From positions 7,316,001 to 7,380,000 of the forward strand of contig CM060733.1 in NCBI GenBank assembly GCA_030704615.1: a stretch of 64,000 bases of DNA, given 5' to 3'. Shown one piece after another: positions 39,615-62,720 of this stretch. Position 1 is the first letter of the stretch. Every line of letters starts with the position of its first letter. Below the pieces are notes generated by a model. That model saw only the letters and a program-made list of their open reading frames with translations, did not search any database and was not told where the DNA came from. This DNA comes from Takakia lepidozioides (taxonomy: Eukaryota; Plantae; Bryophyta). Made by a program: the position numbers and the translations under genes.

Positions 39615-42600
39615 ATGAGTTCCCCTCGCCCATGCGGAGGACTTCCAATTAATCACCCTTGTAGACAGAACACCCGAGATGACAGGTTGTGGGAAAGAGA
39701 AGTGGCACGTGCCCGAGCCCTTGGGCTTTCAAGGATGCCATGCCCATGTGAACGTTGTTTGGGCACTACAAGTAGATCTGAGGACGGTGTGCGCACACAT
39801 CTCCTTCACCACAAAAGACATGAAGCATTTCGGGTGTGGATTGGAGATGGACCTGCAGACGAAGACGATGAGGAGTGGGCACAATTGGACAATGCACACC
39901 CCCGAGGGAGCCATACAGACAGGCCAGACGAGGACTATGTCATGGGCGCAGGACATGAACCAGGCATGGACGGAGGGGTGGAGATTACTCGAATGTTGCA
40001 GGAAGCATTCCACATCATGGACGATGCTGAAGAGGGGGACGGCGCTGCGACAACTGGGGATGGTGATGACGCAGGAAATGAAGGCATTCACGTGGGGGAA
40101 GGCGTGGAAGGAGGTGGAGATGGAGAATTGAATTCTGCACACATGACACTAGAAGAAGCATGTGTGCCACTGTACGAGGGATGCAAATCCACAAAGCTTG
40201 CTGCCACCATGCTGTTGATGAACCTGTGCACAACCCACGGTGTCTCAGACCATTTTGTGGACGAGTTGTTCTCTTTGCTTCGGCTGAACTTGCTTCCACA
40301 ACCAAATGAAATGCCAAAAAGCTGTCACATGGCCAACCAAATGATTGGGAAGCTCGGCCTCAACTACGTGAAAATACATGCATGTCCAAAAGGACATGTA
40401 CTTTTCAGAAGAGAGTACAAGGATGCTATGGAGTGCCCCAAATGCGGTGCAGCCCGATACCATGATGTGGGCAGGTTACAACAGCCAGCCAAGGTGTTGA
40501 GGCACTTTCCCCTTATCCCCCGTCTATTACGAATGTACAAATGCAAGACCATTAGTGAGCTCATGACTTGGCATTCCAGGAATGCCTCAAACGATGGTTT
40601 GGTAAGGCATGTCCCAGATTCCCTTGCATGGAAGCATATAGATGCAACTTGGCCCGATTTTGCCGAGGACCCACGCAATGTGCGATTGGCTGTATCTACG
40701 GATGGAGTAAACCCATACGGATCAAAGAGTTGCACATGGTCCACATGGCCCGTGCAGTTGGTGGCATACAACCTGCCACCATGGTTGACAACAAAGAAAT
40801 TCTTTGTCATGTTGTCTCTCTTGATTCCAGGCAAGGAGTCCGTGACAAATGCAAACATAGATGTGTATTTGCAACCATTGATTGAAGAGCTACAGGAACT
40901 ATGGATTGGAGTTGAAGCTTACGACATTTTGAAACCAGTAGGGCAACGGAGTTTCACCCTCCGTGCCATACTCATGTGGTCAATCCACGATTTCCCCGCA
41001 TATGGCCTTGTTGCGGGTTGCAAGACGAAGGGCTACAAAGGGTGCCCCATTTGTGGGCCCTATGTGGATTCACGGCACTCAAAGCCACTAGGGAAGACAA
41101 TATACATGGGGCATCGACGTTACCTTGCAAGAAACCACCCCTACCGACGAGCAGGAAGGCACTTCAATGGATGTGTTGAAAAGAGAATGGCACCAAATGT
41201 TGTGACACCGGAGGAGACATTGCAATTTGCAAAGGAGAAAAGGGATTTGCCATACTGGAAGGTGCATGAATCCCCCCCCCCCCCATTCACTCACTTTCTT
41301 TCACATTGTGCTTCCTGGAATTACCTTTACTGTCAGGAGTCCTTCCACCAACTCCTAAGTCAGTGTAACTACTATGCAGTAGATGTTGAAGTCGTACACC
41401 TCACTGTGGAGAGGATCGTGGAGTTGTTGAAAGCAGAATGTAGTAACATGGACAACTTCTGCCACATATTCTACTTTTTTGGCCCATAGAACTTGGTGTC
41501 ATGGGAGGACATTTGGCATTTCAGAACCTCTTGCAGCGGTACCTCCTGGACCCCATGCATTGTGAGAAGAACTTCTGCGAGAACATTCTGAAGACTATCT
41601 TTGGGGAGAAGGATACGATAAACGTACGAAAGGACATGGAGATTGAAGGGATACGGTCACATCTGTGGCTAAGGCCTGATCCAAATAGACCAGGCAAAGT
41701 GCTCATGCCAGCAGCATCATACGTCCTGACCAAATCAGAGCAAGAGGATTTTTTGAAGACATTGGGAGCCATGAAAGTGCCAACCGGATTCTCGGGTGCT
41801 TTCCAAAAGCATGCCATAAACAAGAAATGGTCGGGGATGAAGTCACATGATCTACACGTGATGATGCAACAGATTTTGCCAGTGTGCATTCGGGGTACGA
41901 TGGCGCCAGGTCCTCGAACAGCCATAATGCGTGTAAGTCGAGTGTTTAGGAAGATTTGTGCGAAGGTGTGGGATCCGAGGGACATTACATCGTTGCATGA
42001 GGATGTGGCTATGACCTTATGTTTGCTGGAGAAAGAATTCCCTCCATCATTCTTTGACGTCATGACGCACTTGCTAGTGCATCTTGTAGAGGAGTTGCAT
42101 GTGTGTGGGCCCGTAGCCAGCCGGTGGATGTACCCCATGGAGAGGTACATGAAGGATCTGAAGGGGTATGTACGCAACATGGCACGGCCAGAGGGGAGTA
42201 TGGCGGAGGGCTACATCCGCGACGAAGCCCTGGGCTTCATGACAGAGTATATGTCTTCATTTGATGCAATACAACGACGGGTGTGGGACGAGAACGAGGA
42301 AGAAGGAGTTGTAGGCGAGGTCCTAGAAGGTGGTGGAACAAAGCGTGCCATGAGCCCGCGCCTTCGGGATGTGGCACATGATTATGTGCTGAACAACACA
42401 ACAACCATGACACCATGGAGACAGTGGGTGCCAACTTACATCCCTCCTGTGCTATTCTTAATGGTTTTGTATGCTGGAATTACATATATATTGTCACAAG
42501 TCATTCCGGCCACTATGGGAGTGGGATCGTGTACTAACAGGGTGCTTCAGACGACTACAGAGGGTGTTTCGTAGATCTTGGTTGTTGCTTGCAAGTGATT

Positions 42601-43607
42601 ATGAAGTAGGCTGCATCACTACAGTGTGCTTGAAAGGACACACACTCTGCATGTGGCATGCATGTACAGCACGGTGTTGGTCAGGGGGACTGAGTTGCAG
42701 CTTCTATTTGGTTTCTGCCAGAAAGTACGCAGCGGAGAAGGTCCGCCTGAAAATGGAACGGAGTGCATTTGCAAAAGCATGGCGGAGGGGCGGTCGTAGG
42801 CGCAGATCCCCGGTGGAGTACCCCACAACAATGGAGGAGCTGCAGCCCTTTACAGTGTGGGTCAGATCTGCAATTGCAGTGTATGCATCAGAGAACGAGG
42901 ACCCAGATGAGGGCATGGTGAGTCTGTCATTCCCCCCAGGGCTGATTGCCACTTCGTACCGGTCAATGAAAGCATATGGCAATCACTATAGAGTGGACGA
43001 TGCCAACACCAGCCTCCTGGTGACTTATGACAACGGAGTGGCATCATTTTTTGAACAAGAGAGTAGGAGCTGTGCACGAGATCGGAATCCAATTTCATGC
43101 CATGTGCAATATGTAGGAGTGATCAAAGAGATCCTTAAACTAGACTATGGTCTTGTGAAGCCAATTCTATTCCGTTGTTCTTGGGTAAAAGCCAATATGG
43201 TAGGAGAGAATGCCACCATGAAACGGGATGAGTACGGGTTCCTCCTTGCTGATTTCAGAAAAATGCTACCACAAGATGAAGAGTCATTCATCTTCCCATC
43301 GCAAGTTGAGCAAGTTTTCTTTTCAGATGACACCCATGCGCCGGGATGGAAGGTGGTTCTTCACAAGGACCCCTGGGCCAAACGAGTCGTGGCCGACGTC
43401 CATGATCTGGACCTAGGGGAGAATGCCGACCACGAGGGTCTGAGGGAACCACGAAATCTACCAGATACGGCCGAACCAGTCTCTTTGGAAGGAGCAATTA
43501 CCTTTAATGAGGAAGACATTCCAGGGTTGGTAATTACCGCAAGGCAAATTGCAGATGTGGGTAGTGAAGGGGAAGATTATTTGGATACAGATAGTGAGCC
43601 CAGCTGA
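39615..43607 (+). CDS. CACTA/En-Spm TnpD (Tnp2) transposase, spliced, near-complete
   Basis: CPCERC..HL (transposase-associated domain); IHACP..CPKC; RNVRLAVSTDGVNPY..STWPV..YNLPPW; WSIHDFPAYG; LPYW; intron 41262-41524; LDPMHCEKN; MKSHD; FPPSFFDVMTHLLVHL..GPV..WMYPMERYM..PEGSMAEGY; final exon YVGVIKEIL.LDY..LFRCSW..FIFPSQVEQVFF..WKVV. A short deletion appears to lie just before LPYW. Confidence 0.95.
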
Positions 43608-44267: not shown

Positions 44268-46260
44268 TCAGCCGGTGTACAACCTCTTCCTGCTCCTGGT
44301 GGGAGACGGCACGGATGGGAGATTGCCTATGTAGCCATGCCTCTCCATAAAGTCTTTGTACCATGCAAGTGACTTTCCATTCCCATCATCCACAGTAGTC
44401 ATAACTGGGTCTTCACCAGGGTACTGAAGACCCTCCTCCATCATGGCAGTCAAGTCCAAAATCTTTCCCTTCGTAGCTCTCACCAATGCAAGAAGATGTT
44501 GTTGGAGGAATTTGTTGGTATCTGTCAGTTGAAGGATACTTTCCCACTCTGTAGAGATAAGGGCAAGTAGGTTGGGCAATGTACTTGTACCAGCGGATGT
44601 TTTGTGAGCCATAGAAGGGGAGGTTAGACCTAGGGGAGTTCGTGAAGACAAAGGCATGGAAGAGGGGGACTGATGGGCGGTTAGCAAGTTGTGGAGGCCA
44701 CCTTTACATGTGCCCAATAGGGATCCGCACAACTTTGCAATCAGCCCGTCCTCCACATGGGGGTGGAGCATCTTCAAAACCTTTACCTGGTGTGCACACA
44801 TATTTCCTTTCTGGGCCCAATGACAATCACAGCAACCCCACTTAGAATCCGGATTGTGGACAGTATATGTCATACCCAAATGGCGGTGGCATTGAACTGT
44901 TGCAATGCCTCTAGGTGTGTCAGGCAGGTGCACATTCGCATCTGGAATGTTGTTGGTAAGCAAAATAGAAGTACAAACAAATCCCTCCTGCCGCTTGTTT
45001 CGGATGAACCCATAAGCCTTCACATGTGACATGTACCAATAATGGGTTAGCACATCACCTGTCAGTTCAGAGATGAGTTGGAATCCACCCGCCTACTACC
45101 GAGGATGCTTTTGGTGCTCTTCAATTGCGCTTTAAGGTTCCCGTGGTATTGCAGCATTAGTATCTTGAGAGGCATGAGGTATGTTCCGGGATCCCTTCAT
45201 CCACATTTTGGCTTTTGGAAGCCACTCTCTCTCCATGTAGGTGCAAAATTTTGTCTCAGAAGGGTACTTCTCCCGCAGGTCCAGAATTTTGAATACGGCC
45301 CAAACAAATGCTCAAACACGGCCATCGTCGCATAGTTGCTTGTGATGCAACCTTTGGGACGAATGAAAAGAAGGTTGCGGCAGTTTCTTAACCCAAATGT
45401 CCTCAAAGCTTGTCAAATTATGTTCTTCATGTGAACTTTTCTGTTCTTGTACCATTTCCTTTGAACTCACTTCAGTTACACATGATTATTGTTGCAGTAC
45501 CCCTTGTATACCATGATGGTATTCGACAACTGGCTGAATGGTATTCCAGTGGCTTACATTATCACTGGAAGGTGCAAAACCATCGATCTTAGGCCTTGGA
45601 TAGAGGCACTTAACAAACAAATGACAAGTCTGCAGGTAGACTGGCATCCGAATGCCTTTATTGTGGATGACGCAGATGTTGAAATTGCTGCAATTAGGTA
45701 CGTCCATGAACTGAGACAATATACCTACCATGATCTCTTAGTTACACATGAATTTCAGTTTATCTGCCTGATAAGGGAACAGATCTGTGTGGGGGGATTG
45801 TGTTGTTTTCTTGTGCTTGTGGCATGTTCGCCGAGCCTGGCAGAAGAATGTTGTAGCAAAGGTGAAAGACCCAGTATTGCGAGCGGCTATATTACAAGAT
45901 CTGGCACAGATCATGGACGAGAGAAAGGAGACCTATGGGGATCGAGGGAAGACATCAAGAGGGGATGCATGTGCAGGTTTGTAGTGAAGCAATGCTATGT
46001 GGACCCTGATATTGCAGAGCTGGTTTATTATGAAAAGAGACATGTCAATGGGGCTGGAGAGGTCTGCCATGGACCCACTCAGCAACTAGGTCGTATTTCA
46101 TTACCTCCCCACTTGAGCGATGACATGAAATCCTGGGTGTTACATAACCTACGTCTAGGACTAAGCATCAACAAGATAATGGCAAAGCACACGTAGAGGG
46201 TGAGGGATATCATGGATGGGGGGTTGGAGGTTACTCGTGATACCTTCCTTCTTTTAATTG
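44268..46260. mobile_element. Rearranged Mutator (MULE/SWIM) transposase remnant in three pieces
   Basis: Minus 45160-44268: NAAI..YHGNLK..RRVD..HYWY and SWIM CDC..CAH. Plus ~45300-45920: CDATFGTN, YPLYTMMVFD..GIPVA, FIVDD, LCLWHVRRAW. Plus ~45935-46260: KRGCMCRFVVK..H..CHG (N-terminal domain). Confidence 0.8.
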
Positions 46261-46378: not shown

Positions 46379-46411
<33 letters not shown>

Positions 46412-46419
46412 GAGAGAGA
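46379..46419. repeat. (AG)n microsatellite
   Basis: Near-pure AG run of about 40 nt. Confidence 0.95.
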
Positions 46420-48399
46420 CCTTCCCATTTTGGTTGCCCCGAGTTAATTGAAACGATGAGGGATATTATTGATCTACATGCATAGAGTTTATAAGGCGCA
46501 CACTAGAAAAGGCTCGGGAGTTTAATGCGAGCCCTTCGGTCCTGCCTGCGTGGCACCCCCCTCGCCCCCCACAGCCCCCCCCCCCCCCCCCCCCCGGTGC
46601 CCGCGCGGCTTGCGGTCGCCGAGCCCGCCCCCCGCTCTGCCGCCCCTGTGCTTGCTGCTCACTGTAAGTTTGGGTAATAACCTCCGGTCTGGCGGGATTG
46701 CCTACTTGTGGTGTGATTCGTGATCACTTTAGTTTGACTTTACCTCGAGTGCTTGACCTGAGAGTCCTGTAGCTTCAAGCTTGAGCACGTATCCTGGTTG
46801 CAAATCTTACATAAAGTTTTGGTGCTTTTGGCTTGGTTACTTTAATGATTTTATCGTCGTGTAATATGTAACGATCTAAGATTGGAGTTATCTCAGAAAT
46901 CAAATTCGTATGTTATCACTTATCACTAACTGCCGCTGGGTGAAAAACTCCTCGTGCCAAAATTACAAACCACAGAACTCAACGAAGAAACTGCTTAAGG
47001 CCGGATCCCCAATGAGAATTGTGACAAAAAACATCGGCCAGATAGGTGCCACTTGGAGCATTATGGCTCTGGTCCATGGAAGCCTTGCTGCCTACCAGTG
47101 CACATTCTCAATTTCTTCATACAAGTTGCGTTAGGCTCCAGCCAATCTTAGCTTGCTCAGTATCAGCTTCAGGATGCAGGGTGACGCCTAAAGTGCATAA
47201 ACTACCCACCCTATTGGGCAGTTGTGACTTTCAGAAGGCCTCTGTGCCTCCGTGCAAGCATGTCAGAAGCAATTGTGTTTGTCATTTGAGATGTTTCTAT
47301 GTGCAGCTGCACACCGCAGGCCAACACGACCACACATGCACCATCATATGTCCTCCCAATATAATTCACCTAATTAAGCAGAGATTTGTTCCTTGCAACA
47401 CGGCTTTTAGAACATCATCTGGTCTAAGATATCTTAGGGATTAAGTATTATTATCTTCGTGTGGCCACCGTTGGTTCCCTAAGGTGCCCTATTATGTAAG
47501 GCATCCCAAACCAATGTTCCACAGCTGCCACCATGGGCTGCCTAAAGAGGAGCAAAGTAAAATTATACAGAGCACGATATTAGCAAACATGAGGCACATT
47601 CTGTCGCCAAAAGGTGGCGCTTGAAATGTCCAAATCCCAATAGATATGACCCCATTGAACAGTAAACGTGGGGTTTTCATCCAACCCACGTGAGGTCAGA
47701 CACTGGGAATTGGCCGGCTAAAATGAGAGAAATCGAATATTTGCTACTAATAAATCTTCTTGCTGAGTCACCTTCGGTTGCCAAAGGTGACACATTAAAT
47801 GCTCAATTTATGCAGATTTGTCAGTATTGAACAACATGTGGGGTTCGATGAACAGACATGTCAATAAAAGTTCTCCTACTTTTTGGTGTACCATGCATTT
47901 CGCATGGTTTTATAACGAATTTCCTCGGTGTCCTGGAAACATTCTACCTTTTTTGCCCTGAACAATGGGTTTGGGCCCCACCTCCGTTTTCCAAAGGTGC
48001 CACGAAAATACCGCATGGACTGCGATGCAGTGGAAATGGCACCGAGAACTGAGATTCGAGAACCTCATTGCGATTGTCTTTCTTCCACCTATGGTTGAAG
48101 GAGGTTGCTCCGGTGATGCTACACAGTGCAATTGTAGTGTGCACAACTGTCAATTTTTCTATTAATTTCATGATCGTTCTGAACCTCAATGCCATTGGCT
48201 CTACCACCTATGGTAGACGAAGGTTCGTTGTGTGATGGGTTATCAAGGAATTGTTCTTAAGTCGGAAGAAATTTAAATTGTTGAAAGATGTATCTTTCTC
48301 TCTTACTTCGAATTGTCTTCCGTGATTTCCTTGATATCTATGTGTTGAATGTTATGACTTTTTTACCGAAGTTATTCCAAATTCCTGCGAATACGTATT

Positions 48400-49369
48400 T
48401 ACTTCGAAGTGAATTAAATAAATATATTGTGTGTAATTACCTAATATCAATAAATCAAATGTGTTGGGGTGCAATGAAGCCCTCATGTGCAGATGTTGCT
48501 CATCGGCTGTTATGGAAACCCTCGAGCATGCCTGCTGCATTGCCAAGCACCTGCTATTCTCTGGCCCATAATAAAAAGTTTCTACAGACCCTGGAATCAA
48601 TGCTCTATATCCCAAATTCACATTCTTCTAAGCTATGACCAGAGCTCCAAATCTAGAGTGCTACCCTGCCCAGTATTTGACACTCTTCGGAGCTCAACAC
48701 TCTGGCACATTTGGAAAGCAAGATGCAATAGAACTTTACTCTGCTAGAACTTGTGGAATATCTGCCCTGCTCACCAACGTTTACCAGGACCTTCAAATTG
48801 AGGGCTTGATAAATACTGTGTGCAGATGTGAAAGAGCGCCACGATAGGCAGGTGCGCTCCACAGTACCTTTACCTCGACATGGGGGAGGGAGGGCATCCT
48901 ATGCTACAGCTCCAGCCCAGACAGCTGCCTATGGAATGTCCTGCCCCCGACTGCCTGGAGGGACATCCGCGGCACCGTCCAGAGCATCACCGGAGTTTGA
49001 TAGAGACATAAATTGGAAGCATATCAAGCAGTCATCAAAAGTCTCAAAGTTCAGCTTTCGCTAATCACATGGCTACTTGGTAGTCCGCAGAAAGCGACTC
49101 ACAACTGCACCCCACGCTCTTAACGAATTCGGATGATTTTCTCAATAAGTGACACTGATCTTCTTGCATAAGTTTGGTTTTAAGGCCGTGGGCCTTGGTA
49201 GATTGTATCATACTCGGAATGAGTAGCAAGTTCCCCCCTTCACTGACGACGGTGTGTGTGCCTTATGGTGTAATCGAGGGTTTTAATTTTTTCCCTCTAA
49301 TAATTATGAAATAAAGCTTCAGGGTCTCTGTCCCTGTTCTTCAAAATAAAATAAAAATAAAAATAAAAA
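48400..49369 (+). mobile_element. L1-type LINE 3' fragment with A-rich tail
   Basis: ETLEH..C and STLWHIWKARCNR motifs typical of the L1 ORF2 C-terminus; ends in an (AAAAT)n-type tail at 49343-49369. Confidence 0.6.
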
Positions 49370-49400
49370 TGTGTAAATAGTATATATACATAATACATAC

Positions 49401-49431
<31 letters not shown>

Positions 49432-49686
49432 CCTCATAATATATTGTAGAAATGTATGTTGGTCTATCTATTTATTAGGCCACAATATTGCGGAAAGCTG
49501 TTAAGGACACACTCAGTTATTTTTTATCATCATTTATTATATATGTATTATAATGTCTGCTTTGTGATTGGTCGATATATTATTTGTTTTCTTCCTATGC
49601 CTGCTTTATATATATGGCACTAAAACCATACCCCCCGCTTATTCTTGCGCTCTCAACAGGAATCTGTGCCGCTTAACCTAACGTAA

Positions 49687-52600
49687 ATGGAGCAGGACAA
49701 TACCTCAAAACCTCAGCGTCGATATTCGTTGAGGAGCAACTGTATTGCCAGCACCGCTGTGTCTGGAGAGCAAGGTGTGGTTGGTGGCCGTCCAAAGCGT
49801 GGCTTGCGCACTTGTTCAAAGGAAATGTCGCAGGTTCTCTTACGTTTTTCTCTTGTTCTCGTGGTGGGGCTGTGCGTGTTCCTGTTTCATTTCTTGTCGC
49901 GTTCACTGTGCGTGTTTCCTCGCTGTGGGACCGTGTTCGTTTTTACTTTCTTGGTCTTTGTGTTTCCAGCGCGCATTGTTATGTCTTCTGCTCCATTCCG
50001 CTAAGGTCCGTCATCTCCCTCTCTCAATCCCCTTCTTTGCACGTTCGCTGAAGCAGCACTGAAGTCGGCTGCATGGATAGGCTTGGGGAAACGACAACAA
50101 CGGCCACATACTGAACCCTGCTGCTGTTATAAAGTGTTCCTTGTCGCTTCTTCCGTAGGCTTCGATCTTTGCTGCTATTTCATTTGTGGTTAGGAAAGAT
50201 AAAAAGATTCATCCCGTTTGCATTTTGTGATACAATCACCTTCGCAAAGATCCTAGTTTAGATGAGCGTTTATGTCAAAGGTTTGTGTTCATTTTCTTTC
50301 TGTTCATGTTTCCAGCCTGCATTGCTATGCTTTGTTGTGCCAATGGCTTTGTTGTTTCTAAGCTTTGCTGTTTGTTTTTGTTTTTGCTCTATCTTTTTAT
50401 TATGCTTGTTGTTCATTGTGTGCAGGATTTGGAGGGAGGCAGCCGGTTTTCAGACTGAGGTCTTAGCACGCTATTAGAGAAAGCGGACATATTGCAGGAT
50501 TGTTTGCCGCTACCTCCTATCGCGGATGGCATTGTGGAGGATCTAGATGGGGAGTTCTTAGCCACCCCTTATGTCGATCGCTCCATCGAGCCAACTGTGA
50601 GCGAGCTCGACCGCGTACACCTTGCAGCTCCCTCGAAGAAGGCCATCGCAGGTGGAGGTGAAGTAGTCAAGGCTATTGGGCATCGTGGGCAGTGGGAGTC
50701 GTCTTACAGGGGCCCTCAAGCTTCTTTGTCTCCCCACAAGCAGGTCTTTGCGAGGCCAGATGTGAGTATTCTGAACAGCCCGGTTATTTCAGTTACTGCA
50801 TCAACCATGGATATGCCAGCATCAAACACACATTCATTGTACAATGAGGAGGAAGTCCCTGCGGTCCCCAAGCCCGCTGGGCTTGCATCTGCAACGGAGG
50901 AGATCTTGGATCAAGGCGATGCCATGAAGCAGTTGCTTGTGCTAGAAGACCACAACACAGGAAATTTGCAGTCCGTGGTCAACAAACTTGCGATAAGTTA
51001 TTCCACCTTGCTTCCCAAAGTGCCTCTTTGTAGGATGATCTTGAATCCAAAAATTAGACCGATTGTAGGGGAGAATGCGGGAGATGCATTGAAAGATTGT
51101 TTTCTTACGAATGGGTATGTGGAAGGGCACGGGTATTTTTATTTGACACCCACCGATGAGATGGAGAACCCCGCATTGGTCAATTCTCATCAGCCTCACA
51201 CTCTGCATCAAACTCGTCGCTAACCTGTTGCCAGTGTGCACTCCACCCTGCTCGGATCGTCATGGGTGAAAAATCGTATGTTTTACGTGTGGGATGGCAA
51301 TCACCGCCTGCACACGTGGTTTAAATTGATCAATACTGTGAAGGCAAAGGAGAAACAATGGCATGTGCGAGTGCAATCTAAAATTCTTCGATGCCAGGCG
51401 AACACAATCGGCATGCTCAAAGCTGCCATGTTCCAAACAAACGCATAAGCTACTTGACTTGTAGCACATGACTTGACTGTTAAGGAATTCCAATTTCATC
51501 TTCATCATGTCCGTACTTCAAACTTCTTGTGTTGCGTTGCTTGCAGTATTAATGAGAAGGCGTTTGTGAAGACCGAGGACATACACAACCTATGGTATAT
51601 TCAAATGATAGGTACTAGCCCAATAGAGCAATACAAGGGGCTCCTCACCAAGCAGCATTACGAGAAATCTCTGGCCAAGGAGCCTGGGAAAACTTGGTAT
51701 ACGATGACCCAAGAGGCTATGATTGAGATTTTGGCGCATGTGAGTTCCTCTTACATTGCACTTCATGGATTACTTGTCCGTTGGAATTGCACAGTTAAGG
51801 TGGTCCATAAGATTCGCTCACGAGGATTGTTTGATTGGCAAGCAGGCGGACATCATGAAGGCCATTGCACAAGCTAAAATAAGGCACGATGCCGATACAC
51901 CAGAGCAAGAACAAAACCGTGACGGGTTGGCGGTGGCCATTGTTGCAACCAAAAACAGTGCAAAGGCGAAGGCATCTAAGCAGATAGTAAAGAAGTTGTC
52001 TGTTTGTGATCCCGGCAACGGGTCCAATTTCTTGAAAACTCTACAAACGTGTCAAGAGGGGGGGGAAAGAGTGGGCTTGGAGAGAGAGCATATTTGATTG
52101 CGACTTCTGAAGTTTCCCCAGAAGAAAAGCAAAGGTGGTTGCAGCTGCATATTGCAGCACCTGCCCAACAGACATAAGCTTTTTTTCCGGGGGTGGAGGG
52201 GAAGATCACAGACAAGATAATGGACACGTGGCTGTCCAAAGAGACATGGTGGTTTCAGGTCATGAGTCTTCCCCCTACGATACTCATGTAGTAGTTGTAT
52301 GTCTTTCTTTATGGACTGCTCTCTAACACCAATATGATATCCACAGGTAACAACAAAAGCTATGGAGCTGCTCGGCAATATCACGGATTTCCCTATGGAT
52401 GAGGGAACTGCACCTCCCTTGGACCGGTGGATACAACAATGGAAGAAGAAGGCATACAAGCAATTATTCCTATCGGAGATTGAATCCCATCGCCGGACAA
52501 TGCTGGTGTCAGATGACTAAGGCGGCCCTCGTGCCGCTAAAAGACTGGTTTACAGGTACACCTTTGTCCAAGCTCCCACCTCCGTTCTCTTGGTAGTTCA

Positions 52601-55600
52601 GGGCTTGTTGTGAGCCACATCCCCTCATCCCAAATTCTATGCCACCTTCGTTGTCCAAACATGCGAAGATATGAATAGACAACCAAGCATGTTACTTCAG
52701 TGACAGATAAGCCACCTTCGTCCACCGTAGGTGCCTGCAAATTGAAAGATAGGCCACCTTTGGTTGACGAAGGTGGAGGCTGAGTGGGAGAACATAAAGG
52801 TAAATACGCAATAAATGGATGACCCAGGAAGGACGAAGGTTTCTCGTTTTATAGGGTTAGCTAAATCAATTTTGAAATCTGAACTTATGGTAGATGCATG
52901 TTAATTCCCGCCATTGATTTCTCCGAAGTTGATCATAGCCATCCAGGTCAAGCTTCGACCTTCGTCCGACGCAGGTCAGTTGTTTGAGCGTTTATAATGT
53001 TTTGAGCTGCTCTAAACATTGTTTTGAGCAATTTCAGCGTTTTGACAGGCTCAAAACATTGTTTTGACAGAATAAATATTTCAAACAGTTGCGGGTTAAA
53101 TCCATCCGGTAACGGATCCTCGATGTACTCTCTTTCTCAACGGTCACTCTCATTCTAATATATGCCGATGCTAATAAATAATCTGTATAATGTACCCACC
53201 TTCGATAGTAGGAGGTTCCCTATAGGCACAGTTGTGCAGTAAGGTGCCCATGTATGAGAAGTATAATCTACTAATTCAAATATATTATTTTTATCCGCCG
53301 ATACTAATCTCTTATCTATTTAGTCTATGTTAAACATATCTCAGAATGTTATTGATTTTTGACCGTACACTTTAATCTGTACCCACCTATGGTTGACGGA
53401 GGTGACAGTGTAGCCGTAATGACAGGTAGAATATAAATATTTTGAGTCCATTTATATTTATTTTCAGTCTATCGATTCTACACTATAATACATAATGTCG
53501 ATAGACTAATCTTATTGTCTATATAATTGTTGTAATATGTTATACGACTTTTCCAATGTAAAGTCTTTAGACTACAATATATATATATATATATATATAT
53601 AGTTTATATACATTTTATACACGGCGTAGATACGGATTAAGTCTACGAATGTCTGTAATCGTGTGTAGTCGTTTGCACACATAGTTTTAAATGCTATTCA
53701 TCTTCGCTTTGGCCTTTAACCGACCTTCGTTTTACGGTGCTACCCTAGGGTCGGAGGTGCGCAGGGAGCTATGTAGCCCTAATGTCAGTATACACAAAGT
53801 TAAAATATTATGTGATATACAGTTTAGTTTAAAATCTACGAAATATGTAGTCTTTAATCTATAAAGTCTATGTACTGCTAGATGGATTGGTCATGACTAG
53901 ATGATTATGACGAGTGATTTGTATACTTGTGTTGCATTAGTGATGATTAATGATCCATCACTAATCCATCATCTATATATTGTGTTATGATATCTGTATG
54001 TATCTCTCTGACTATACAGATAGAAATCATATGATATGGTAATCAGATATATATATTTTATTTAAATCTACACATTGTACATTAGTTTGCCGGCGATCAG
54101 CATCCGTCCTAGCAGCAGATATTTGCTATATTCCTTAACCTCCGTTTGACGTAGGTAGGCAGTGGATGGGCTCGGTTGACTACATGGACCTCTGCATATC
54201 AACTTTTACAATGCATATTGTGTACTTTTGTTCTGGTATATTTGCTGTTTCGATGTACATATTATAAGGGGAGCGTAGACGCAGATTAACCTCGTATTGT
54301 CGTTGCCTCGGGTATCTTCTTGAGGTTCATGGAATTGAATATCTACCCTCTGTCACCGAGGCTTGGACGACTGTTGACAACGACAAAATTACTATGTACA
54401 CTACTGACCAGTCTAGGAACATCACCCTGTTTGTGCATCTCTATGCCCCTGGTATCTGGACTACCCTGCCAAGGAAGGTCCGGCTAGTGAGAGACAAAAG
54501 ATTGCTGCTGAGGAGGGCAAGGTTGGTAAGGACAATCCGACCCGGGCGTCCGATACTGAGAATACCCAGCGACAACAACGACATCGAGAGGCCCTCAACA
54601 CCGCAACTGCTTTGGAAGATGAAAGGATTGCAGCTATGGAAGCTGAAAAAGCGAAAAACAAACGGAGACAGTATATTACAGTGGGCAAGAGGAACAAGGG
54701 AGACAAAGCACAAACTGCATGTGATCGTGGAGAATCGAAACTTTCAGGAAGTGCAGATGACGGAACCCAGAACAAGAAGAAGAGAAGACATAGTGGAACT
54801 AAAAATGACGACATGGTCTGGGAAGCCAGGTACATTGGTTCTTCTTCTGCTTCCCTAGATTCCAAGGTTTTGTGTTTGCAGGGGGATGTAAAAACATTGG
54901 CAACCCTCATTAAATCCGACAAGATGGAAAAGGAGTCCTTGTTGTATTCAATCTCCAAGTTCCTTGGTGATGTTGGGTGTGAGAATACTGGGACACGTAA
55001 CCTTGAAACTACGGACATGGTGTTCTGGGAGCTTCCGGACGGTCACAGTGTTGATCCTGTTGATCCGTCATTGACCCCCGACGATGATGATGTCCCTGAA
55101 TGGAATGAGTATTCTCATGAAAACATGGTCCACGCATTTGAGATAGCGTACCAACTCATGGACGATAATGGTTGCTTCATTGTTGTGGCGCCAAGTGATC
55201 TGCGGATGTCGATACATAGGCACATGAGGAAGAAGGAGATGAGACACTTCAGGACGTGGACATGCATCAACGACAGAGCTTTGAATTGCAACACAGGGAA
55301 GGTGAGATCTTATGCTTTACATTTCAGGCGTTTGTGGTGGTGTTTCTTGGAGTGCTAATCTGTTTCCCTTTTGATTTACATTTCCATCACTTGTGGTGGT
55401 ATTTGTTGGAGTGCTAATCTGTTTCCCTTCCTCTGTATGTACACAGACATTTGTCTTTGAAATGCATTGTTTGGTGCTGGAGTCGTGCAAGGATTTTCAT
55501 ATCAGTGAACAAGGGTTTGTTTTTTCAAAGAACCCGGATTGTTTCACTGGGGATCTGTTGAGACACTATCTTCCAGCATCTGAGATGACAGTATCACCCG

Positions 55601-56584
55601 AAGGCAACCCTTACAGAGGACGCAAAGAAAAATCCCCTGCGTTCTATCAGACACTCATGGAGTTATGTTCCTCTGAGGGTGCGGTTTTGGATATCACAGC
55701 ATCAACAGGTAATATTTTCTCATTCCTCCTCTTATCTGGTGATTGGACATTTGCAATGACAGATGATGGCCGTGTGCCCAGAAGAGTCCAAACAGCGTTT
55801 CTTTCGTGGTGAGCAATTAAGGACAGAGGTCCTTCAATATGGAATTCTAACAAATTTATGGATACGTTTGGCTTGTAGGCATTTTTACACTTTTTGCCTA
55901 GTAAACCTTCATCATATTGCGCCTTCTGGCTTTGGCTTCCCAGGTATTATGCTTTAACAGTACAATGCATTTAGAATCTCATACCGTCTAAATTACTACT
56001 GTAGGGAACTCAGTGAAAGCTGCAAGTACGTCCGGAAGACACATCGTTGCAATGGAGGGGGACAAAGAGGTGTTTGAAGATGTTCTACGGTGATTGAATG
56101 ACTCCAGTCAGAAGAAAACACGAGCTGCCTTGCAACCTCCTCGAAAGTCTGCGGTCAAATATATTGTGGACGGATCAGATGGCGAGGGAGATTTGTGAGT
56201 GAGTCATTTCATTACCCTGCTTGCAACGTTGCTGTGTTAATCATTTCCATTCTGTATGTGGTTTTGACCTTATGACCACAAATGTTCAGGCAACCGGTCG
56301 TGAAGAGGCGGAGGATGAGAGGACCATTGTATACCTACGATGTTGAGTTGCCCCTGAGCCCACAGTTGTTTCCAGAGCTCCCAATGTATGCAGAGGCGGC
56401 GGCCCAAAGACAAGCGACATCAAATCACGACAAGGAGTGGGATAACACCATCACCTGGACACGGAAGAAGTCCTTATTTGGGAATGATAGTTATGTTTAT
56501 GTTCTGGACAAGGCTATCGAGGCATGTGACATGCCAACAATAGTATGGGCACAAGCTCGGTCGATGTTTTGCCCGACTGTGTAA
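49687..56584 (+). pseudogene. Multi-exon ParB/Srx-like domain plus beta-class amino-DNA methyltransferase-like (N6_N4_Mtase fold) gene, decayed
   Basis: Approximate exons: 49687-49833; ~50498-51444 (VPLCRM..IRP..GY..FYVWDGNHRLHTW); 51547-51739; ~51845-52258; ~52347-52556; ~54417-55301 (DMVFWELPDG..PEWN..AYQLMDDNGCFIVV); 55447-55708 (YRGRKEKSPAFYQTLMELCSSEGAVLDITAST); 56005-56194 (GNSVKAASTSGRHIVAMEGDKEVF); 56291-56584. Contains stops, a frameshift and an ~82-bp inversion. Confidence 0.75.
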
Positions 56585-57489
56585 TAGATTTGGTTTCTGA
56601 GGACACTTCTGAATAGCACATTTCATCACATTTGGGATATTTACATTTTGGGACCATACATGTCACATTTCAAAAAAATGGGTAATAATGTTATTTAATC
56701 CCAGGTCCGATGTGATGTCCTTGCTTGTTGTGGTGTATAAGGTCAGATGACACAACCCCAGAATATATTTGTCAAATATTTGCAATTTGTCACCACCTAT
56801 GTTACATTTATGAAGCATGTCAGATTGTCCCATCTCCTCGAATGTTCAAAACTGCATTCCCCAGTTAATGCATTCTTCCATTTTGTCGCATTTTGTTTTT
56901 TCCTTGGTCGTCATTGTGTAGATATACATTCCATTCATATGCAATTGACATGACCCAGGGAGTACAAGGGTGTCTCGTTTTCTATTGTTACATTTATCAA
57001 TTGTGCAATTTGTACCTATGGTAGATGCATGTGAATTCCCACCGTCGATTTCTCCGAAGTTGATCATACCCGACCGGGTCAAGCTTGTACCTTCGGCCCT
57101 CCTATTTTTTACATCTTGGATTGCCCAGCTATCGACTATGACCTTTGGTGAACGAAGGTTACCCTCTTTATGGCTTCTTTGGTCTCTGCAACATTCGAAA
57201 CTACGTTGCACGAACATGGAAGAATTCTGCATGTTTTTTAGCCATTTATATCTCTACCTTGGTTTATCGTATGCTGCAAAAATGTCCGGGGATGCAAGTG
57301 AAAATATAAATTTGTTGGACCTCAGTTGAACGAAGGTGTCTCTTTTGTCACTTGGAATGTGATCTTGTATTCAATTTCAAACTCTAAAATTTAATTTTTT
57401 CAGACAAGTTCGTTGCGCAGATTGAAATGTTCTTGTTCATCTTTTTTGACCTTCGTCACTGGTGGAATTGCGTTGGCAACTGACAGAAT

Positions 57490-58402
57490 ATGAGCTCTCC
57501 CCCCCCCCGGTCTGTTTTTTTGTCTAACTCTGGTAGTACCTGATCCGAACGTTGTACCCACGGCTGTGCCTCTGGCATTACCTCCTCAACCACCTCCACT
57601 TTCATCTCCTCCGCCAGCAGTACCACCTCCACCAGTACCACCTCTACCTCCACCTCCACATGCATGTGCCCCCCGAACCCCTATGAGGGGTCGGCTTCGC
57701 CCTAGGTTTCCTCCCCTTCGGCTTGGGTGGCCTGAGCCGGATCCTTGCCCTCGATGGGAAGCGCATAGGACTATGTTACTGAGAATCGTCCAACCTCGTT
57801 GTTGGGGAAATCATCTCGACCCTCCTACTCCCATCCGAGAGAATGTGGAGTTCAAGTATTGAGGTAGATGGTATGTTGTGAGAGCCGCTACTGACCCTGC
57901 TATGGGTCGGGGTTTATTCATGGTCAATGATATTGTAGTTTCTCCTCGGAGAAACAACATGGTGGACTTGTTTCCTTACTACGGTCTATACTACATCTCC
58001 GGGGAGTTCCGTACATTATGCCTCGAAGCCCCATACATCCTACCCTACATTTTGTGTGTCAACGAACAGGATGTACGTAGATGGGGGTTGTTTCCCATTG
58101 AGATCAGATTTTGTGATGGTGACCCCGATATCTTCGGCAATGTTGTTGGGCTTATCAACAGTTCTTTTGGTCATCCTATGAGAACCAATGTAGTATGGGA
58201 CGAGCGAAGCGACGGGCATGAGAGCTTCTGTGGTGACACATCGGTATATTGTGAGGGGATGCACATGTTTGTCATGACATGTGCTAGTATGACTATTAGG
58301 CTGGCAGCGAGTTATTTGCCTCATACGAGTTCTCCCGGGATGATTGGGACCTCCGGTTACAGCATGAGTGAGATGTGTATGATAGAAATAGGGTTCTTTT
58401 GA
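57490..58402 (+). pseudogene. Pro-rich N-terminus plus SET-domain protein, one stop and frameshifts
   Basis: MGRGLF..I..YYG..GNVVGLINSS..N..FVMTCASMTI, then in the shifted frame AGSELFASYE (~58300-58330). These correspond to the SET motifs GxG, (R)xINHS and ELxxxY. The 57566 and 57878 ORFs share a frame separated by one TGA. Confidence 0.7.
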
Positions 58403-59419
58403 GACAGGGATCGCGTAGAGGGACATTGTATATATTCTCATGATGTACTTTGTATACATCCGATTAATCGATTGATGTAAATATTTTTCTTGTTGCTCGT
58501 GTGGGTTGCAACTTTGCATATGTGATCTGAACATACTTATGCACATGTGGACCAAATATGAGCTTGAACCAAGTTCATTCAATGGGTCATTCTAGTGTTG
58601 AACGCAACTACGTGTCGGAGAGACGAAAAATTGCGTTTCGCCTGCGCATGATTTTTTTTTTTATTCCATTTTTCAAGCCATATGCTTAATGACAACATAT
58701 GCAATGTGCGTGCAAAATTTGGGAGTAAACAAAAGTCATTTGGACCCAGAACCATATTTTGTTCTCTCATTTGCACTCCAAAGTTGAGTTATCTTCAACT
58801 TCATGCACTCTTCATAGAGAATTCTGTAAAAGTGACCCTAGAAACACACTTATTTTTTTTCCATTTTGTTTTGTCCATTTTTTTGTATGGATGTAGTGGT
58901 GCTAACCCCAATGTCACGGAATAAAATAGAGCCAAAAATAAAATCAATACGCCCCTCAAAACCGCAATTCTATATTTTCTAAATACAAATATTTATTTAA
59001 ATTCTTTTAAATTCGATTTAATTCAAATTTGGTTCAAGGGTGAGTGCGTCGTTGGGGAGGCAAATGTTTTTTTTTTTGCTGGATCTTTGCACATGGGTTG
59101 CACACATATTTAAACACATGCGGGAGAATGTAAAGCTTGAGCCTCATCCGTTTGATGGGTGCAATGGCATGAGAGGATTTTCTTTCACATTAATAAACAA
59201 AAATTGGTTGATAGGGTGAACGCGTCCTTGGGGGGGCAAATGATTTTGTTTGGGTTTGAAACTTTGCATGCGTGACGTTGCGCACATACATGTAATTATT
59301 GAATGACAGATTTGATGCATGCACACATTGAAGGTTGTTGTTTGCATTTCGTTTATAATAAGTTGTATGGTTGCAATGACACATTATAATATATGCCCGT
59401 ATGTTCATTTGTTCGTATC

Positions 59420-62208
59420 AGGACTTTGTCCATCCCTTCCCGGTGCTTTCTTGGGGGACCCCATCCGAAAACAACCCAAGTACATTAGGTGAGAGCCGTG
59501 GGCGAGACGCCGCCCCCACCGTTGATCAAGTACCGAACGATGATGACGATGATAGTGACATTGATAGCAGGAGTGAGGATAGAATTAACCAGGAGGATGT
59601 GCAAGCTATGGAGGATCTCTTAATGCATCATGTAGGCGTTGATGCAACCCATGGAGAAGAAACCAGGCCAATCGTTGATCCTGAAATGGGCCCCTCAAAT
59701 GACATGGAGAGGGAGGCGAGAACTCCCTTGTATGAAGGGGCGAAAGTGAGTCGACTTTCATCAATCTTACTATTGCTCAATTTTCAAGTTCGATTTGGCA
59801 TAAGTAATGTTGGGATGTCTGCCATAATGCGAACTATCGCGGACTATATCTTTGCTCCACACTTGAAACCTAAGATGTCAAGGTCGCGGAAAGAGGCGCG
59901 CGAAGTGTGGGGATGGCCTATAAGATGTTTCATGCATGTCCATGTGATAAAACCCTATACTACGGAGATGATTCGCGTCTTACCAAGTGCCCAAAGTACA
60001 AAGAAGACCGATATCAGGATGATGTCCAAGGGAAAAAAAAGTACCACGCAAGGTATAAGCGTCATTCTCCCTTGCATGGAAATTTTCTTCTTTAATCTTG
60101 TCAATGCATGTCAAGTATATTCCACAAAGTTTAGGGTTTAGAGAGTAGTACTCATGCAAGATCTGATTGTGGCTTTGGAAAGAGTGAGTAATATTAGCGA
60201 CGTTCGGTTTTGACCATTCACGCCCATGAGGGAGAGGCTGTATAAAGGGAAAGACATAAGGGTGTTGTATTATGTATCATAATGGGATGATTATATGTGG
60301 CGGACGTGGGGTATTTATCCTAGAAAATGCATTATTTTCCGTTCATCCCGCGATTGAAGGCACACTACCGAAGCCCGGAGTTGGTAACACTGATGAGATG
60401 GCACGCCTCGCATTGGAGCCCCCCGAGAAAGGTGTGCGGGCCACAAGATTCACAAGCATGGAGGCATACTGAAGAGATGTGGCATTTTCTCTCAAGGAGG
60501 ACCCACGACATGTCCGCCTCGGCTTCTCCTCGGATGGGGTCAACCCATACTTTGTCCAGTCATGTAGTCATTCCACTTGGCCGGTGACCTTGGTGAATTA
60601 CAACATCTCTCTGTATCTTTCAATAAAAAAAGACCATATCATGTTGGCTGCCATTGTACCAGGTGAGTGTTCCCATTTCATGCTTATTATTCCATTGGAC
60701 TTTACATTAATCTTATGATCTCTGGCGCAATTCGGATGCAAGATTGATGAGTGACATAATCATGGAGTAAGACGTGTAATTCATTATGTAGTATAATTTG
60801 CATATTGGTGGAGAATTGAAACAATGATGTGAATGTCTCATAGGGAAAAAACAAGTGACAAACATGGACACGTACTTGCGACCTCTAGTTGATGAACTTA
60901 AGGAGCTATGGAGGGGGGTCCCGACATTGGATGCTTCACTTGACCCTATGGCCGGACAATCTTTTCAGATGAGAGACATATTGCTTTGGACAATGCATGA
61001 TTATGCAGGTATATTATGTTCCCCATGAAGAACCCACGTACATTTACTTGTCAAGGTCGGATAGTCTTGTCAAGGCGACAGTCTTGTGCACCGTAGTGGG
61101 GTAGATGGCACCATGGGCCATGCACATGAGAACTTATTGTCTTGGCTAATGTGGCGGGATGTGTACAAGACTAACTATTTGCTCGGGGCTAAGCACCAAA
61201 GGGTACCATGCGTGCTTGCATTATGATGATGATCTTGATACACATAGCTCCCGCTATCTTCCCAAGATAGTGTATCCCAACTACCGCAAGTTTCTTCATA
61301 TGAGCCATCGATGGAGAAGACGAGAGAAACACTTGTTTGATGGCAAAGAGGAGGTACCCCCCCCCTGTGACACCATCCGGGCAGTTTTGGGAAGACCGAT
61401 GGAAGGAGGCCCATGCGGGCACGGTCGGTGAAGTGGAAATGTCCGGCATGAAGCGACTTTCAATCTTCTACGAGTTGCCATATTGGGCGGTACGTATTCC
61501 ACAAAAACACCATCAATATCCTATGCATGCATGTGATATTGCACATTTGGTATGCGTTGCATTGTCACTTTCACGTCAAAAAATTTGTGTAAGCATTTGT
61601 GGATGGGGATATATGTAGGACCTGAAGATTCGCCATCTTCTAGATCCCATGCACATTGAGAAGAATGTCTGCTCGTCCCTTTTTCGGGTTCTTAATGGCA
61701 CGCTGGCAAAGAAGGGAGTGGCTGCAAAAGGAAATTATCTCGGTGTTAGAAAGGAGCTTGAGGAGCAAGGTCACATGCGCCATCTATGGGCCGAACAAAA
61801 TGGTGTGGACCCAAAGGGTGTTGTACGGTGGAAGTATAGGCGCGCATTTTGGCAATGGACAAAGGAGGAATACAAGAATGTGATAGTCACCATAGGTGCT
61901 GTCCGAACACCAACTGGTTATGGGTCATCCCTCCGTATGAAGTTCAACGAAGAAGACGAGGTCGACCATGGTTTGAAGTCTCATGACTACCACAATAATT
62001 TGCAAGACATCTTGCCCATTGCAGTATGTGGGACATTGACTCCCGAGGTTTGCGAGACAATCTACAGATTGGGAGGCTTGTTCCGGTGGATTTGCTCCAA
62101 AGAGTTGGAGGAAGCGGATTTTCCACGCATGAAGAAGGAGTTAGCAGAGGTAATGTGTATGTTGGAGATGAACCTTCATCCCTCCTTCTTTGACATCCAA
62201 GTGCACTT
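59420..62208 (+). pseudogene. Second CACTA TnpD transposase, frameshifted and cut off by a nested CACTA end
   Basis: PLYEGAK..HACPC..CPK; YFPFIPRLK; RHVRLGFSSDGVNPY..STWPV..YN; MDTYLRPLVDELKELW..WTMHDYAG; SIFYELPYW; LDPMHIEKNV; KSHDYH; PSFFDIQVH, then an abrupt switch to non-coding sequence. Confidence 0.92.
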
Positions 62209-62720
62209 CACTACAAGAAAAATTGGCTTTTACGACTCTGTCTTATGACTGCAAATGCAGTTATGAAAGCCATTTACGATTCCCTGACTCTGAAGAAGTA
62301 GAAGCCGAGTTAGTTGTGACATGGTAGTCGTGGCTGCCATTGAGTCGTAAGTGACAGTCGCCAGGCTTTGTGTGACATGGTGCCTGAGCAGCGCGTTCAT
62401 GGTCATACACGCTGGCTTTACTGAATGACTGAACGGACAGTGTAGTCCATGTCATCGGTTGTGCAAGAGTGACATGTGCTCGATATAGAAAATGACACGT
62501 GGCAGAGTGTTCGCTCTCCATGACTGGAACTATGACTACGGGCGTGCTAATTCGGTTGCAGCACATGGCGCGTTGCAGTTTTTACACATGGTCCCTCAGG
62601 AGATTGACATGTGTCATGATGGGTGTTTTATTATGTATTTCTACACATTTGTATTTTTGCCACGTGGTGCATTACTATTGGAGAGTGAAAATAGATTATT
62701 ATGACTATGGTAGAAGTCAT
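62209..62720 (+). mobile_element. Terminal inverted repeat and subterminal region of a nested CACTA element
   Basis: CACTACAAGAAAAATTGGCTTTTACGAC begins at 62209, exactly where transposase homology ends. It is followed by TAYGAC/GTCGT subterminal repeats in both orientations. The predicted TSD is CTT (62206-62208); the partner end was not found in the window. Confidence 0.85.

Follow-up and report, generated by a model that had tools for sequence, protein, structure and literature searches.

A dead copy of a probable transposon cargo gene with ParB/Srx-like and methyltransferase-like domains in Takakia lepidozioides

A 64,000-nucleotide stretch of the Takakia lepidozioides genome (GenBank assembly GCA_030704615.1, contig CM060733.1, positions 7,316,001 to 7,380,000 of the forward strand; hereafter the window) contains the exons of a gene that joins a ParB/Srx-like module to a PF01555-type, methyltransferase-like module. 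This gene is very probably a dead member of a cargo gene family that DNA transposons of seed-free land plants carry in many copies. The intact protein would begin with a ParB/Srx-fold domain bearing the nucleotide-binding-type motif DGNHR, followed by a middle region, a charged linker and the methyltransferase-like domain.

The exons of the window gene lie on the plus strand. The inverted segment within the ParB exon reads on the minus strand. Evidence is given in brackets.

50999–51445, plus strand: ParB/Srx-like exon (IPLCRM ... GYVEGHGYFYL ... MFYVWDGNHR ... MFQTNA), interrupted by an inversion (blastp, tblastn)
51183–51284, minus strand: inverted segment, helical insert of the ParB domain (..AGWSAHWQQVSDEFDAECEADEN) (tblastn with the family sequence P0144, joints in DNA contigs)
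51287–51307, plus strand: VWDGNHR motif, with the DGNHR part at 51293–51307 (sequence)
51542–51799, plus strand: conserved middle exon (VKT..H.L..IQ..G..P.EQ(F/Y)K..L.....KTWY) (tblastn with the related locus L038, E = 2e-9)
54612–55301, plus strand: K/E-rich linker and exon of methyltransferase half A (tblastn, jackhmmer, ESM Atlas)
55014–55043, plus strand: DMVFWELPDG, with the motif IV equivalent WELPDG at 55026–55043 (sequence)
55302–55446, plus strand: intron A/B, GT-AG, phase 0, holding a 59-nt tandem duplication (sequence)
55447–55708, plus strand: methyltransferase exon B, carrying motif X (PYRGRKEKSPAFYQTLMEL) and a variant of motif I (VLDITASTG)
55709–56004, plus strand: intron B/C, GT-AG, phase 1 (sequence)
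56005–56194, plus strand: methyltransferase exon C (NSVKAASTSGRHIVAMEGDKEVFEDV; motif II region) (sequence, PHROG, blastp)
56195–56289, plus strand: last intron, GT-AG, phase 2 (sequence)
56290–56584, plus strand: last exon (..LPMYAEA..), with the stop codon at 56582–56584 (phase-2 join, diverged genomic copy)

The string QLMDDNGCFIV is in the same open reading frame (ORF) as DMVFWELPDG (54612–55358, plus strand). VLDITASTG and NSVKAASTSGRHIVAME (55684–56057 in all, plus strand) are separated by a GT-AG intron: EKSPAFYQTLMELCSSEGAVLDITASTG ends at 55708, directly before GTAAT, and NSVKAASTSGRHIVAME starts at 56005, after the acceptor TAG, whose last base is 56004. The last exon is conserved in a diverged genomic copy at 56376–56519, and its LP(V/M)YAEA motif is common to the related locus L037. 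An earlier, sequence-only reading of this DNA had quoted strings from these exons; all are present on the plus strand where it had placed them, with consistent intron phases. Its range for the gene, 49687–56584, holds in part. The plus-strand gene parts map to 50999–56584, and the 5' part of the range (49687–50450) has no demonstrated gene membership. The 59-nt tandem duplication in the A/B intron spans 55309–55426.

Protein searches and folding for the family were carried out on single exons, one by one. The starting query for relatives is the 70-amino-acid (aa) window ORF that contains VWDGNHR. A metagenome scan with this ORF recovers 32 loci from plant-associated metagenomes. The decayed genes in these loci share the order ParB-like exon, middle exon, methyltransferase half A, half B. 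A search with an alignment of the metagenome pieces yields a ParB exon family whose database members number 303 ORFs (E ≤ 0.01). Among these, the top 120, with E-values from 1e-38 to 1e-61, are intact exons of the ParB type, approximately 130–330 aa long, and none of them carries a name or a Pfam domain annotation. Three sets of relatives are used below: the alignment A3, made of 120 natural ParB-exon homologues; P0158 and P0144, which are family ORFs from the database; and L036–L046, which are long, eukaryote-like contigs (up to 727 kb, GC content about 0.40) with better preserved family genes. In the source organism, the family is multi-copy and is found on 239 DNA contigs, with identities from less than 90% to more than 99%.

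Dozens of independent loci share the order and the common strand of these exon blocks. When L038 is compared with the 64-kb window by tblastn, only four matches are found, at 50999–51442 (E = 3e-15), 51542–51799 (E = 2e-9), 55014–55340 (E = 3e-5) and 55537–55716 (E = 2.5e-5). These matches are in the same order as in L038 and all are on the plus strand, an agreement well beyond chance. With a diverged copy from elsewhere in the source organism's genome, the exons align and the introns do not. An intron at the B/C position is common to L037, L038, L043 and L045, whereas L036 and L041 lack it. The ParB and methyltransferase halves are assigned to one gene because their exon order recurs in many independent loci, which is strong comparative evidence. 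The fusion proposed in the sequence-only reading is supported on these grounds.

For the N-terminal module, a high-confidence model of the family matches ParB/Srx structures only. The two ParB pieces of the window share 40–48% identity with family ORFs (blastp, E = 1e-9 to 1e-15). In A3, the residues P-L-C-R-M, V-R-P, G-Y, F-Y, W..W..N..F and M-F-x-V-x-D-G-N-H-R..A-W are nearly invariant, and each of the D, G, N, H and R of DGNHR is kept in at least 90% of the 120 sequences. The phosphate-binding motif of this fold (GxxR, DGxHR or GGCHR type, at a strand-helix junction) is present in the window as DGNHR at 51293–51307. A family member was used for modelling, as the window copy is broken. The AlphaFold2 model of P0158 residues 1–151, built with A3, has a predicted local distance difference test (pLDDT) score of 90 and a predicted template modelling score of 0.86. 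The first 48 Foldseek matches of this model in the PDB are all ParB/Srx-fold proteins (probability up to 1.0) and include Noc, ParB with CDP or CTPgS, PadC, KorB, sulfiredoxin, SerK and SbnI. With VIA-align, the model matches the N-domain of Caulobacter ParB with a Z-score of 8.7 and a root-mean-square deviation of 2.4 Å over 93 residues. Other CTP-type ParBs give Z-scores of 8.0–8.4 and sulfiredoxins give 5–6.5. The plant domain contains a 45-aa helical insert.

Weak Pfam matches among the 120 family members searched are to DUF1015 (n = 12), DndB (n = 2) and DUF6551 (n = 1), which we take to be ParB/Srx-type families. The window ParB ORF has the same weak DUF1015 match as the family members. 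Pfam ParB_N (PF02195) matches neither the window nor any of the 120 family members; the module is therefore a divergent member of the ParB/Srx fold superfamily that lies outside this Pfam family. Based on the confident model of a family member, the N-terminal module of the family is predicted to have a ParB/Srx fold. This agrees with the sequence-only reading, and the window copy is tied to the modelled family by its 40–48% identity. The middle exon (51542–51799) recruits 32 pieces with jackhmmer and has no match in Pfam or the PDB.

The C-terminal module is largely as the sequence-only reading had described it: a beta-class, PF01555-type methyltransferase-like domain, as judged by homology, which is split over three exons and has motif IV ahead of motifs X and I. 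In pieces of L036, L038 and L041 that are homologous to window exons B and C, PF01555 is the strongest Pfam match and, in two of the three, the sole match. All three matches cover profile positions 163–218 of 221.

L036, 13051–13401: PF01555 match, 27.0 bits (cut-off 26.7), E = 5e-6
L038, 14960–15268: PF01555 match, 22.3 bits, E = 1.4e-4
L041, 12992–13414: PF01555 match, 19.3 bits, E = 1.2e-3

When the methyltransferase exons of L038 and L041 are compared with the whole window (tblastn), the only matches are at 55014–55340, 55095–55265, 55537–55716 and 55555–55710. Exon A is matched by L038 (E = 3e-5) and L041 (E = 6e-5), and exon B by L041 (E = 1.5e-6) and L038 (E = 2.5e-5). A jackhmmer search started from the two methyltransferase exons of L038 recovers the window pieces at E = 6e-29 (A) and 1e-37 (B), together with all other clades. 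In exon-by-exon blastp, each of the exons A, B and C pairs with its own counterpart; for exon C, the matches to the L037 and L036 pieces have E-values of 5e-6 and 1e-5 in a small database. Two weak, mutually independent signals come from the window itself. Exon A falls among PF01555 clusters in the ESM Atlas (score 0.93, 17 of 30 matches), and exon C matches a PHROG DNA-methyltransferase family at E = 0.037.

The motif order in the window is IV (WELPDG, 55026–55043), X and I (55620–55708) and II (56005–56084), and this order is the same in all relatives. The canonical form of motif IV, (D/S/N)-P-P-(Y/F/W/H), is replaced by E-L-P-D in the window (WELPDG), by D-L/I/V-P-E/S/K in most relatives and by D-Q/H-P-H in one clade. 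L038, L045 and L046 have ADLPEG or ADIPEN, L043 has ADVPEN, the metagenome clade L008–L033 has DVPSN, L037 has DVPKG, and L041, L042 and L036 have ADQPHG or ADHPHG. The family consensus is D/E-x-P-x-G/N. The second proline is absent, and H occupies the aromatic position in one clade only. Motif I differs in a similar way from the canonical D-P-F-x-G-S-G. The window and L041 have DITASTG, and the family also includes DCSTATG, DCTAATG, DFSASTG, DCTASTG, DIFSSTG and DFNCGMG (overall D-x-T/F/S/N-A/S/T/C-S/A/G-T/M-G). The clade without an intron after motif I (L036 13051–13401; L041 12992–13414) has ADHPHG or ADQPHG, which is nearest to the canonical catalytic loop.

In beta-class amino-methyltransferases, the (D/S/N)PP(Y/F/W) and FxGxG loops hold the flipped target base and the cofactor. 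In this family the canonical loops are replaced and the aromatic position is variable, which argues against canonical catalysis in most clades. The domain is probably not a canonical amino-methyltransferase, judging by its motifs. The sequence-only reading had correctly noted that motifs IV and I are non-canonical, as seen in the window and across the family alignments. A correction to it is that the odd motifs do not stem from decay of this copy: the variants are conserved across clades and are traits of the family. The conserved loss of canonical catalytic motifs suggests that the methyltransferase fold is re-used for another role.

The window copy is dead, and the protein cannot be made from it. 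In the ParB exon, a segment at approximately 51183–51284 is inverted in place (tblastn with P0144 residues 109–133, frame -3, 48% identity, E = 6.5e-4). This micro-inversion accounts for an in-frame TAA at 51221 and for six "opposite strands" joints at 51168–51267 in DNA contigs of other genomic copies. In exon C, there is a premature in-frame TGA at 56085–56087. The two lesions bear out the decay noted from the sequence earlier. A 32-nt segment at 51278–51309, which encodes MFYVWDGNHRL, occurs in DNA contigs with a depth of approximately 4,500, versus approximately 100–300 elsewhere, and in two presumed RNA contigs. In the contigs with this match, the upstream flank translates to DPLFQHLSGK, which fits the family. 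The high-depth contigs may represent an abundant, possibly transcribed relative of the gene in the same organism.

The gene is surrounded by, and contains, copies of a 19-bp palindrome, ACCTNNG-N5-CNNAGGT. With up to one mismatch, the window contains 15 copies versus 1.65 expected, and none of 100 shuffles reaches 15. Fourteen of the 15 lie within 47467–57337, in three groups:

47467–48224: five palindromes, upstream cluster
52714–54156: seven palindromes, inside the large middle intron
57141–57337: two palindromes, downstream of the gene

A 149-nt direct repeat (52819–52967 and 56950–57098, 81% identity) holds or adjoins palindromes of the array. In L038, approximately 31 tandem units of 139 bp at 4349–8664 each contain a different palindrome, TCTCGGATCCGAGA, and more copies of TCTCGGATCCGAGA are found in an L038 intron at approximately 10180–10900. 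The L038 array lies directly upstream of the ParB exon of a gene that appears intact, with a large minus-strand ORF on its other side. The ACCTNNG-N5-CNNAGGT palindrome is absent from the related loci and L038 has its own; the sites are therefore specific to each element lineage. Lineage-specific arrays are the pattern expected of a ParB-parS-like pair, and the palindromes are putative binding sites.

These observations are consistent with a model in which the element recognises its own DNA. The ParB-like part, perhaps as a nucleoside triphosphate (NTP)-dependent clamp, would recognise the element's own palindromes, as modelled on ParB-parS, and would bring the methyltransferase-like part to the element DNA. 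The methyltransferase-like part would then mark this DNA or, more likely, bind or shield it without canonical methyl transfer. Binding or shielding is the likelier of the two because the motifs are non-canonical. The transposon could in this way tell itself from host DNA and resist silencing, which would be its benefit from the gene. Few transposons carry proteins that recognise and modify their own DNA; examples are VANDAL elements and, as described in 2025, algal transposons with ParB/methyltransferase cargo genes. The present family shows that in seed-free land plants the design of a ParB domain with an amino-methyltransferase domain is old, widely distributed and under selection. Because the palindromes are lineage-specific and co-vary with the protein, a ParB-parS-like self-recognition in a eukaryotic nucleus becomes directly testable. 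The dead window copy is a further witness to the family and possibly a case of association with a CACTA element.

Single window exons give few matches in general databases. Against Pfam, NCBIfam and PHROGs, the only matches are DUF1015 (E = 0.06) and the PHROG DNA-methyltransferase family (E = 0.037). A phmmer search with the window ORF 54612–55355 against 1.84 billion representatives gives a low-complexity match only. Sequence searches of the PDB with the exon-A ORF and with the ParB profiles A1 and A3 contain no ParB or methyltransferase match, a tblastn comparison of window exon B with phages contains no methylase match, and a metagenome scan with window exon A as the query gives no matches.

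Several results weigh against the interpretation of the window as a cargo gene of this kind. None of the window's own exons reaches the Pfam threshold. No helix-turn-helix (HTH) or other DNA-binding domain is detected after the ParB domain when the conserved middle exon is searched with Pfam or a PDB profile. The AlphaFold2 model of half A has a pLDDT of 52; it shows a beta-alpha-beta-alpha-beta pattern, and Foldseek gives no meaningful match to it. There is no RNA support for the window copy or its splicing: the runs listed as holding the sequence are DNA runs, and the two presumed RNA runs contain the 32-nt match only. A profile of 112 bacterial ParB-methyltransferases gives no signal on the window pieces with hmmsearch or hhalign. 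The same profile is also silent on the loci and family alignments of the relatives, and it is too narrow for the plant family.

It is scarcely credible that the resemblance to ParB and to methyltransferases comes from motifs that match by chance, in DNA that is non-coding or codes for something unrelated. The lack of any window exon above a curated threshold would fit chance, but the ParB exon has hundreds of conserved, intact homologues and a confident fold match, the homologous exons of relatives match PF01555, and the four conserved exon blocks keep their order. In intact members, the methyltransferase-like domain is unlikely to act as an N4C or N6A DNA methyltransferase that marks the element, though some features favour such activity. 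The C-terminal half is placed in PF01555 by the match of a relative, the D of motif IV, the P at its third position and the final G of motif I are retained, and the motif IV of one clade (ADQPHG/ADHPHG) is near DPPH/DPPY. Eukaryotic PF01555 enzymes can be active, as in Marchantia DN4MT1 (bioRxiv 10.1101/2021.02.12.428880) and bdelloid N4CMT (PMC8885841). The position of the catalytic aromatic residue is nevertheless E, S, K, D or H and is unconserved, the second proline is absent, the FxGxG loop is replaced, and the window copy has WELPDG.

The identity of the carrier is divided between two readings, each of which is possible and, on balance, doubtful. In one, the cassette of palindromes, gene and SET-like ORF is cargo of a CACTA element with its transposase at 59.4–62.2 kb. 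The cassette lies between two CACTA transposase genes (39615–43607 and 59380–62248) and is on the same strand as both. Transposase_21 and DUF4218 fragments of the downstream gene are 2.8 kb from the cassette gene, and Pfam recognises no other transposase beside it. Red-algal EnSpm/Plavaka elements carry N6-methyltransferase+SET and ParB+2OG genes (bioRxiv 10.1101/2025.02.11.637652), which also fits CACTA carriage. Against it, no CACTA terminal inverted repeats (TIRs) or 3-bp target duplications bound the cassette in the 64-kb window, where short TIR-like pairs are at chance level and a sensitive self-blastn finds no long TIRs. A 3' end of the CACTA element may lie beyond the window. The two transposases are only distantly related (30–54% identity), so that adjacency may be nesting, and in other genomes the partner of the relatives is a different sort of ORF. 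The CACTA carriage inferred in the sequence-only reading is not demonstrated: no TIR pair above chance bounds the cassette within the window, and intact relatives are accompanied by a different large ORF.

In the other reading, the cassette is the remnant of a Mutator-like element that sits between two CACTA elements and has a lost or scrambled transposase. A zinc-finger/DDE-like ORF of 590–730 aa is the head-to-head neighbour of the gene in L038, L041 and L043. These large ORFs are mutually homologous and contain, by eye, Cys/His zinc-finger-like and DDE-like stretches; they have no Pfam match. SWIM-like (CDCHWAQKGNMCAH) and Mutator-like strings in the window ORFs 44271–45092 (minus strand) and 45486–46193 (plus strand), also seen by eye, are in line with a Mutator-like remnant. 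Neither of these window ORFs has a Pfam match even at E = 10, the ORF at 45486–46193 has no homologue in a protein search, and their orientation does not fit a head-to-head pair. The relatives' large ORFs have no counterpart in the window, where only chance-level fragments are found. We consider it rather improbable that land-plant CACTA elements carry a self-recognition and chromatin toolkit of three parts, namely a ParB-methyltransferase-like protein, parS-like palindromes that belong to it and a SET-like protein of divergent sequence. Such a toolkit, if real, would parallel the red-algal EnSpm/Plavaka PAG cassette, and NTP-dependent loading of its ParB module on the palindromes of the element would control the element's chromatin state.

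The closest published system is an accessory protein of the Ectocarpus transposon Sola1-1_Ec32, which consists of a ParB-like domain and an N4C/N6A DNA methyltransferase (PMC12477816). By description, the two are alike in that one transposon-borne eukaryotic protein joins a ParB-like domain to a prokaryote-type amino-methyltransferase. The Ectocarpus protein has been proposed to bind and modify its own element, as is suggested here. The Ectocarpus protein has a brown-alga host and a Sola1 carrier; distinctive of the plant family are its non-canonical motifs IV and I, its numerous introns and palindrome arrays that are specific to each element. In red-algal Plavaka/EnSpm elements, PAG2 combines an N6-methyltransferase with SET, PAG3 combines ParB with a 2-oxoglutarate (2OG) oxygenase, and tandem inverted-repeat arrays lie beside PAG3 (bioRxiv 10.1101/2025.02.11.637652). 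The window is again similar by description, with ParB-like, DNA-methyltransferase and SET-like modules and inverted-repeat arrays. In the red algae, these modules and arrays are within one giant DNA transposon of the EnSpm/CACTA superfamily. In the window, by contrast, the ParB and methyltransferase domains are in one gene and the SET-like ORF is separate and downstream. The features of algal-type cargo are found in the plant family as both domains, multiple copies, palindrome arrays (in the window and L038) and adjacent transposase genes. The design of a ParB-methyltransferase cargo gene was already published for algal transposons in 2025. As far as the literature searched shows, its extension to land plants is new, and that literature contains no land-plant paper on ParB-methyltransferase transposon genes.

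The family also resembles several other systems. Phage and prophage methylases with ParB_N and N6_N4_Mtase domains (for example that of Wolbachia phage WO, L002) likewise have a ParB N-domain followed by PF01555. Those methylases are approximately 410 aa long, intron-less and canonical (DPPY, FxGSG), whereas the plant proteins have the 45-aa ParB insert, a long middle region and altered catalytic motifs. The CTP-dependent clamps ParB, Noc and KorB are the best structural matches (Z-scores of 7.4–8.7), and the clustered palindromes near the gene are parS-like. Unlike these clamps, the family has DGNHR instead of GERRxR, no HTH detected, no ParA partner and a eukaryotic nuclear setting. Marchantia DN4MT1 and bdelloid N4CMT share with the family a prokaryote-derived, beta-class amino-methyltransferase domain in a eukaryotic genome. 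Unlike the family, these two proteins keep (T)SPPY, are host genes with N4-methylcytosine (4mC) activity and are without a ParB domain. According to Iyer et al. (PMC4738411), chlorophytes and chytrids have ParB-HTH fused to Dam-type methyltransferases, and one clade in haptophytes stems from phage ParB-terminase loci.

The SET-like ORF at 57863–58399 (plus strand) contains the strings GRGLF... and ..INSSFGHP... and is flanked by the cassette upstream and the second CACTA transposase downstream. Pfam gives no match to it even at E = 10, and the related loci contain none. The ORFs at 44271–45092 and 45486–46193, which lie on opposite strands, show by eye a GCM/WRKY-like string in addition to the SWIM-like and Mutator-like DDE strings. 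At 47268–47534 (plus strand), SNCVCHLRC, TCTIICPPNIIHL and PKVPYYVRHPKPMFHSCHH occur in order and resemble the zinc-finger region of the L038 large ORF, each at chance level. A (GA)n run and, after it, a long poly-C or C-rich tract (46380–46640) separate the first transposase from the palindromes. Upstream of the first CACTA transposase, there is an RVT_1 reverse-transcriptase fragment at 36160–36927 (plus strand), probably from a nested retroelement. A block at 6378–10170 consists of degenerate repeats, tandem or interspersed, with 75–92% identity.

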